Of a stretch of 64,000 nucleotides of DNA, positions 11,024 to 13,594 are shown piece after piece. Numbering within the stretch: position 1 is the first letter of the stretch; each line of letters opens with the position of its first letter. The notes under the pieces are model-generated. The model had not been told where the DNA came from, did not search any database, and saw only the letters and a list, made by a program, of their open reading frames with translations. The stretch lies in contig MCFE01000041.1 in assembly GCA_002104905.1 (NCBI GenBank), positions 1 to 64,000 of the forward strand, read 5' to 3'. This DNA is from Basidiobolus meristosporus CBS 931.73. Lineage: Eukaryota; Fungi; Basidiobolomycota. The position numbers and the translations under genes are program-made.

Positions 11024-13594
11024 ATGGATTCTAGAGAGCCTTTGACTTCCTCCACAACCACGGCACCCATGGGGCAGGAGGAGAAAAGCTTATTGGAATC
11101 GATGCAGGTGAAGTTGAACATCACTATACCTGGGCGAAGTGAATCTTCCGATTTGCCTGAGGATAATCCGTGGGCGGACTGTCCTCCTAGTCCTCTCTCC
11201 CAGAAATACATTGATTCTATTCACCGGCTAGAAAATGTGTAGGTTTTTCTGCAACTTTTTGGATTGATCTCATTGTCTGATTGGTTTACAAGCAAAAGTG
11301 TTCTAAACTTGCCATCATATTCATAGTGAAACTAATGAGGTCGAGACGCCACACACCCCTACGGACTCACCTACTGCCGAATTGCCTGCTCACTCTGCGA
11401 GCCTAACTTGGGAGAACTCCTTTCATACGCACACGGAGAGTACTAATGCTGACATCTCTACCGAGTACTCTACTTCCCCAATCTCGGCACCCGGTAATTT
11501 GGCTAAATTCAACACTAGCACACATATAGTTGTAGGTACTAACACCCACTTAGAGGTCCCTTCAGTACCAGTAAGGTTGATTGGAAAAAAGACCGAGTCG
11601 CCGCCTGATAACAAGAGTAAAACCCCAAACTCATGTAATCTCTCGTCGGACTCGAAAGAAATACCTGGGCCATATTCGGGGTTTTCTAGCCCAGTACTAA
11701 GTGATGGGTCGGACGGTGGTAGAAATATTACTCCAGGGCCATCTTCACATCAGGATCCAGAACGATTTGAGTACAATCGTTTTCTAGAGCAAATGCGTGA
11801 CAAAAACGCGGCTGTTGTGGCTCGCTACTTGAAAAGGTAGGAAGAATGATCATGTGGGTGTAGCGCCTGTGTAAACTAAAACATTGGCGCAGTTTTCTAA
11901 GAGATTTTGGTCGCAAACCTCTATCCGTCAACGAGCAAATCAAAACCATTCACGAGTTTCTTGATGTAAGTCAGACCTGAAATACAGAAGACGCGCAAAC
12001 TAATAGATTAGCTACACAGAGCATATCACTGAAGATGCAAGGATGTGAGCTCTGGCAAAATGCGACAGAGAAAGAATTTGAAAACGCTACTGAAGGAATG
12101 GAAAAGTTGGTCATGAACCGACTTTATAAATAGTAAGAGAATGTCTACGTTTCTTCCGAGGGCACAAATCCTTACCGGAACTAGTGCTTTTTGTCCAGTC
12201 ACTACCGACGACGCGGAAAAAGACGAGGTGTTAAGTCAAAGAATTCAACTCTACAGATGGGTTCGCGAAGAGCATCTCGATATTCCTGCCAATAGTCATA
12301 ACGAATCATTCTTGCAATTTGCTCAAGCCGGTAGGCATTTCCCTGTCCTCCCCCCTGCTATCGTCGATGCTAATAATAGGGTGTACCTAGAGCTATTGAA
12401 AATGAACCATTACAAAGCCCCGCGCGATAAGCTAATATGCATTCTGAACTGTTGCATCATCATCTTTGATATCCTTTTTACTGTTTACTGCCGCCTCGCG
12501 AAAACCCATGTGCACCAACATCTTTAACTCTGATCTACGATTGTTAAAGCATTTGAATACCGACACCAGCGCCGATAGATTCCTGCCGGTTCTGATTCTG
12601 GTAGTCATTAGAGCCAATCCATCAAAACTCATCTCCAATGTACAGTATGTACCGTCATACTTAGCTGCTTACCTGGTCATCCCGCTCATACATTCTTAGA
12701 TATATTTCGCGCTTCAGGAACCCAGACAAACTCCAATCCGAAGCAGGTTATTACTTGACCAATCTGGTATGTTTCCTTTGCATGGCGTGTAGGTTAGTGC
12801 GATTGATGATTAATGGCCTGTCAGATGGGAGCAATCTCCTTCATTGAAAGTATGGATTGCAAGTCGCTCTCTATTTCCGTGGATGAGTTCAACCGGTATT
12901 GTGCTCTAATCTATCTCAGCTGTGAGATGCGCCACTCACGATTCTCTGCCGTTACAGACACATTGACCAAACGGTAGAGGAAATTTCCCCCAAGCAAACC
13001 CTACCGGAGCCGCTAAGCCGATCATTAAGCTGTGATACTTCCATCAATGCGATTTCTACCCCTAATCAGAAGAATCCTCGGCATTCATTTGAGCCGTCTA
13101 GCAAATCCCACTCACTTCGCCAGAGTGCTCGTCCTGCTAGTACAATATCTCGTTTCCTCTCCGATATCGAAAGCGAAGATGCTGTTACCATCAAAACCCC
13201 CAGCAGATCTCAACCTACGTCAACACACCCAACGCCTTATAGATTGCCCAGAAGTGGCGATAAGCCCAGTATCTCTAGTCTTCGTGAAGCGAGAGGCTTT
13301 AACAGCCTATCCTCACCGCTAAGTGCACGAAAAAGATCCTCCACTGTTGGCCCAACTTATCCAACCACGCCCCTTCGGAAATCGCCTACGTCTGAAAGAA
13401 CACCAGGTTCTTCGGTGGATTATAGTAAAGCATTGGCCATCCTAAAGGATATGTTCACCACTATCGATCCAGCGACTTGTGAATCCATTCTTCACGCTAA
13501 CAAGGGTCATCTGCAGCCATCCATTGAAGCTTTATTAGACATTTCTACCAAAAACATGGTGGCATCCAGTGTGGAGATGAATCAGTTTCACTAA
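11024..13594 (+). CDS. VPS9: Vps9/Rabex-5-type Rab5 GEF with C-terminal CUE domain
   Basis: Exons encode [72 protein letters not shown] (VPS9 domain). C-terminal LKDMFTTIDPATCESILHANKGHLQPSIEALLDIS is CUE-like. The 5' exon boundaries are less certain. Confidence 0.92.
12469..12538 (+). other. U12-type (minor spliceosome) AT-AC intron in VPS9
   Basis: 5' end ATATCCTTTT (12469), branch-like TCTTTAAC (12521-12528), 3' end TCTAC (12538). Removing the 70 nt joins TTT G|GA TTG into [10 protein letters not shown] and restores the frame. Confidence 0.9.

Follow-up and report, generated by a model that had tools for sequence, protein, structure and literature searches.

In this work we analyzed a 64-kb stretch of the genome of Basidiobolus meristosporus CBS 931.73 (hereafter, the window), in which the segment 12469-12538 of the forward strand is almost certainly a real U12-type AT-AC intron of a gene encoding a VPS9-domain Rab5 GEF, as judged from its splice signals, its reading frames and its homologues. 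The finding is correct but ordinary, since B. meristosporus is already published as the fungus richest in minor introns; the AT-AC splicing of this particular intron is also already known, given that the deposited gene model uses the identical junction. The case indicates that minor introns can be picked out correctly from raw sequence, and otherwise it is mostly bookkeeping.

The VPS9 gene of the window

The gene that carries the intron encodes a Vps9/Rabex-5-like Rab5 GEF of 671 amino acids and extends from 11024 to 13594 on the forward strand. It includes ten exons, located at 11024-11238, 11327-11836, 11893-11965, 12020-12132, 12185-12330, 12391-12468, 12539-12644, 12700-12766, 12825-12895 and 12958-13594. 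The model was built with GT-AG borders everywhere except at 12469-12538; the eight remaining introns are 52-88 nt long, and every one of their donors opens with GTA. The joined coding sequence has 2016 nt and a single stop codon, which is terminal. Homology searches were run per exon; the joined translation served solely to verify the frame and to see whether the public protein is a suffix of it.

The gene product from Basidiobolus ranarum K7432_002527 (P0121) and the paralogue P0271 align with the window across 11024-13591. When compared with the Pfam VPS9 profile, the piece of the gene located upstream of the intron corresponds to profile positions 6-35 and the downstream piece to positions 37-78; the intron thus interrupts the VPS9 catalytic domain. 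The score of this profile (PF02204) was 40.7 bits for the piece 12466-12696, against a cut-off of 27, and 26.4 bits, slightly under the cut-off, for the piece 12141-12524. Exon pieces also matched Rabex-5 structures, with E values of 2e-9 and 6e-6, and the structure of Arabidopsis VPS9a. The window gene shares with the Vps9/Rabex-5 (RABGEF1) family both the Pfam VPS9 domain and the alignment to Rabex-5 and VPS9a; its public protein is annotated with PF02204, and its orthologues carry PF18151 together with PF02204. The C-terminal end of the protein resembles the CUE region of its relatives, some of which carry PF02845; the exon at 12959-13591 gave no Pfam CUE match at E ≤ 0.01. A literature search for work linking RABGEF1 to a U12-type intron found no paper. 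Other open reading frames in the window encode an L-serine dehydratase with its SDH alpha and beta portions (2895-4334, forward strand), whose ORF 2895-4331 shows 100% identity to a B. meristosporus CBS 931.73 protein, a protein with a chitin-binding type 1 domain (14276-15283, forward strand) and a CCCH zinc-finger/Pumilio-repeat protein (27204-28196, reverse strand).

Splice signals and reading frames at 12469-12538

Inspection of the sequence together with the gene model defines an AT-AC intron of 70 nt inserted in phase 1. Its 5' splice site, ATATCCTTTT (12469-12478), matches the minor-intron consensus [A/G]TATCCTT directly at the end of the exon. The branch-point motif, TCTTTAAC (12521-12528), is one base off TCCTTAAC, the difference being a single C-to-T change that is expected still to permit a G-U pair with U12. 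Between this motif and the end of the intron, where the terminal AC occupies 12537-12538, there are 10 nt; the presumed branch adenosine is probably 12527, 11 nt ahead of the last intron base. The 3' tail of the intron reads TCTGATCTAC and a polypyrimidine tract is absent from it. The first-pass annotation of the window had proposed a U12-type AT-AC intron with these borders and signals, and all of them, ATATCCTTTT, TCTTTAAC, the spacing of 10 nt and the final AC, are in place.

The exon upstream of the intron (12391-12468) ends with the residues NCCIIIF followed by a G, the first base of a split glycine codon, and the downstream exon (12539-12644), which was placed by the Pfam VPS9 and Rabex-5 alignments, opens with the GA that completes it. 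If the intron were retained, the reading frame would end at a TAA located at 12525-12527 (ORF 12141..12527), after running into the interval as DILFTVYCRLAKTHVHQHL; a functional GEF therefore requires that the intron be removed. Beyond the intron, the VPS9 domain continues in a different frame (ORF 12466..12699), and when P0121 and P0271 were compared with the window by tblastn, the alignments followed frame 3 up to 12476 and frame 1 from 12541. It had also been claimed that only excision restores the conserved stretch of the VPS9 domain; excision yields IFGLLKH in an open frame and matches the public protein ORY03869.1 exactly.

Selection of the splice junction

The ORF 12141-12524 was searched against a representative library, and its closest full-length match, P0121, was then used for a word search. 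The junction was counted in 112 VPS9 homologues, comprising matches from the representative library together with two cluster members, all of them with the anchor PRDK...N.C...F. After this anchor, the pattern G-[LMF]-[LIM]-[KR] is present in 71 of the 112, and the same trend holds for named homologues retrieved by the word search, with G-L-x-K/R or T-L-I-R-R. The B. ranarum proteins P0121 and P0123 likewise speak for the AT-AC junction. The AT-AC junction of the window gene reads IIIF/GLLKH (here and below, a slash marks a splice border). The public protein at this locus, ORY03869.1 (K493DRAFT_63525; P0272, 379 amino acids), is identical to residues 293-671 of the AT-AC model, of which it forms the suffix. 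Taken together, the 71 homologues, this suffix and the frame switch detected by tblastn indicate that the AT-AC borders are right and already in GenBank. The public coding sequence was, we infer, built on transcript evidence.

A different reading places the true intron at 12483-12549 on the forward strand (GTTTAC...AAAG, 67 nt), to be removed by the major spliceosome; the protein would then read IIIF-DILFT-HLNTD and the U12-like motifs would be coincidental. This is the only in-frame GT-AG option; it gives an open model of 672 amino acids, a TTTAAC located 22 nt ahead of the AG could act as a U2 branch site, and similar predictor solutions are found in the paralogue models P0124 and P0273. The known structures do not separate it from the AT-AC junction, since the loop that follows IF differs in length, with 12 residues in Rabex-5 and 16 in VPS9a, and for this reason neither the Pfam nor the PDB alignments discriminate between the two. 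Nonetheless, GTTTAC would stand apart in a gene with eight GTA donors, and the codons for LLK would be intronic yet encode a conserved motif in frame. DILFT is found in no homologue in which the homology continues, in contrast with the GLLKH type of those 71 homologues; a D-I-L at the junction followed by continuing homology was observed only in P0124, which is itself a suspect paralogue model. In addition, ORY03869.1 comes from the same locus and is not a suffix of the GT-AG model. With this evidence, we consider a GT-AG intron at this place very improbable.

It could also be argued that the AT-AC borders are correct but that it is the major (U2-type) spliceosome which excises the intron. U2-type AT-AC introns do exist. 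In this intron, however, the 5' site matches ATATCCTT exactly, the TCCTTAAC-like motif lies at the distance typical of U12-type introns, and there is no polypyrimidine tract; moreover, B. meristosporus has minor snRNAs and hundreds of minor introns (PMC10639083, PMC11347168). Removal by the major spliceosome thus has only a slight chance of being the right explanation.

Least probable of all, to the point of being negligible, is that the interval is unspliced and that the window copy is a decaying duplicate ending at the TAA at 12525: Basidiobolus has several VPS9 paralogues and one copy could be dispensable, but all ten exons are open, conservation persists downstream of the stop codon, full-length identity is 89% to the paralogue P0271 and 77% to P0121 of B. 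ranarum, and the splice signals are intact.

Chance expectation and a look-alike in the window

The RTATCCTT 8-mer by itself is not significant, given that it has 8 matches in the window against 4.7 expected. At the seven sites other than that of the VPS9 intron, a short intron containing a branch motif was looked for, and none was convincing. A composite pattern was defined as ATATCCTT, 20-200 nt, T[TC][CT]TTRAY, 8-13 nt and AC. From 1000 dinucleotide-preserving shuffles, 0.049 occurrences of this AT-AC composite are expected per window when both strands are considered, and the sole occurrence observed falls exactly at the frame break of the VPS9 gene.

A looser composite, ATATCCTT...CTTTTGAT...AC, was found on the reverse strand at 18888-18753. 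It was rejected as a minor intron: it lies inside an intact ORF for a zinc-type alcohol dehydrogenase (18012-19055, reverse strand) that runs uninterrupted for 347 amino acids with continuous Pfam coverage, and hence we consider it a chance match. This look-alike is useful as a negative control, and from it we learn that the motifs are insufficient alone and that the context is decisive.

Minor splicing in B. meristosporus

It has been reported that B. meristosporus has 249 minor introns, which represent 0.554% of its introns and the highest density known in fungi (Larue & Roy 2023, PMC10639083); a second study gives 237 (PMC11347168). Convincing minor introns were not found in Ascomycota and Basidiomycota (PMC10639083). 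High-confidence genes for the U11, U12 and U6atac snRNAs have been described in mucoromycote and zoopagomycote fungi; the same three snRNAs are reported for B. meristosporus, where U4atac is putative and divergent (PMC11347168). The suggestion of the first-pass annotation that this fungus retains U11/U12 splicing agrees with these published works (PMC10639083, PMC11347168); its further idea that slow splicing of the intron might limit Rab5-GEF output is speculative. An Rfam scan of the 64-kb window at gathering thresholds gave no match of any kind, and thus no minor snRNA gene.

The VPS9 intron is no different in kind from the U12-type AT-AC introns described in this species (PMC10639083), and is presumably among the approximately 250 minor introns reported there. 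It shares with them the ATATCCTT 5' site, the AT-AC termini and a TCCTTAAC-like branch motif at approximately 11 nt from the 3' end; likewise, it is in a phase other than 0 and its host is an old, conserved gene. The one C-to-T change in the branch motif is its departure from them. By analogy with characterised minor introns, U11 and later U6atac would recognise the 5' site ATATCCTT, and U12 would pair with TCTTTAAC, bulging the branch adenosine that lies 11 nt before the last intron base. The 3' cut, made after AC, would then join the G at 12468 to the GA at 12539-40, forming the glycine codon of IF-G-L-L-K-H in the VPS9 catalytic domain.

Errors in public gene models

It had been anticipated that standard gene predictors would mis-model this junction. 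This did not occur in K493DRAFT_63525, whose product ORY03869.1 uses it; in contrast, the expectation was borne out in the models K493DRAFT_334882 and K493DRAFT_404578 of B. meristosporus and K7432_003020 of B. ranarum.

The model K493DRAFT_63525 has a shortcoming of another sort. ORY03869.1 begins at an internal methionine (MEKLVMNRLY...), and four upstream exons contained in 11024-12132 align with the first ~285 residues of P0121 from B. ranarum and with the paralogue P0271; from these alignments we conclude that the public model is without 292 N-terminal residues and that the full protein has 671 amino acids. The missing residues include the PF18151 region that is carried by its relatives.

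The product of K493DRAFT_334882 (P0271, 89% identical to the window protein) retains, as if coding, the counterparts of intron 5 and the minor intron, which appear as the segments GRHFPAHPALANTNSTMNL and DILFITCCYLAKPNTSIFNSDLR, respectively; the second of these stands in the context IIIF-DILFITCCYLAKPNTSIFNSDLR-LLKHLN. This translation implies that the equivalent of the minor intron would have 66 nt, with the form ATCTTTAAC...CTAC/GA, its translation beginning with D-I-L-F, as in the window copy, and likewise finishing with IFNSDLR. A length of 66 nt against the 70 nt of the window intron is a frame-shifting difference of 4 nt, which fits non-coding sequence.

More generally, D-I-L is what the paralogue models give at the equivalent site, and G/ATATCCTT would produce just this. 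In a more distant paralogue, K493DRAFT_404578 (P0124), the junction is IVIF-DILLPS-HVDAEAG, and its counterpart in B. ranarum, K7432_003020 (P0273), skips from NCCI to HVEAETG; the two models conflict at precisely this place, and both junctions look like GT-AG solutions forced around a minor intron that occupies the equivalent position and was mis-drawn. The corrections suggested for the public models are, in consequence, an N-terminal extension of K493DRAFT_63525 and, for K493DRAFT_334882, K493DRAFT_404578 and K7432_003020, the revision of minor introns that were retained or wrongly spliced.

The intron position in other fungi

The position of this intron seems to be old, and to hold a U12-type intron in Basidiobolus but a U2-type one in lineages that no longer have the minor spliceosome. 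A fuller proposal, which we advance tentatively and to which we give a little less than an even chance, is that the phase-1 intron in the glycine codon (IF-G-L-L-K) was an ancestral fungal minor intron; it would have been kept as a U12-type AT-AC intron in at least three Basidiobolus paralogues and seemingly in the family of P0150, and would have turned into a GT-AG intron, rather than being lost, in Dikarya-like lineages without a minor spliceosome and in some Mucorales-like relatives. If this is true, minor-to-major intron conversion could be studied cleanly at the VPS9 locus. The conversion of U12-type into U2-type introns has already been discussed (PMC10639083); a position that is U12-type in Basidiobolus and U2-type elsewhere fits the known picture of loss or conversion, and the shared position adds one candidate case.

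This proposal takes its evidence from the translations of ORFs on unannotated contigs. Among the proteins P0122-P0264 there are 32 short ORFs that read CKVIF, then G, and then unrelated sequence. Homology resumes later in P0127, P0168 and P0259, and in P0127 and P0259 it does so at GLIRH, as expected of the read-through of a phase-1 G/GT...AG/G intron. The closest named relatives of these ORFs are Basidiomycota (Dichomitus, Ganoderma, Plicaturopsis, Trametes and Ustilago), and those of P0122 belong to Mucorales. The relatives closest to Basidiomycota and Mucorales thus appear to hold an ordinary GT intron at the same glycine codon; these GT-AG introns share the phase-1 position with the Basidiobolus intron and, as read from translations only, would be U2-type. 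A different pattern, CKVIF-DILFN, was observed in three ENA metagenome ORFs (P0150, P0378 and P0379) carried by contigs of 1.2-2.1 kb from an AT-rich organism; the IF-DILF of these ORFs suggests an intron whose first base is A, with ATATCCTT as the simplest reading, and their best named match, from Mortierellomycotina, is ~42% identical.
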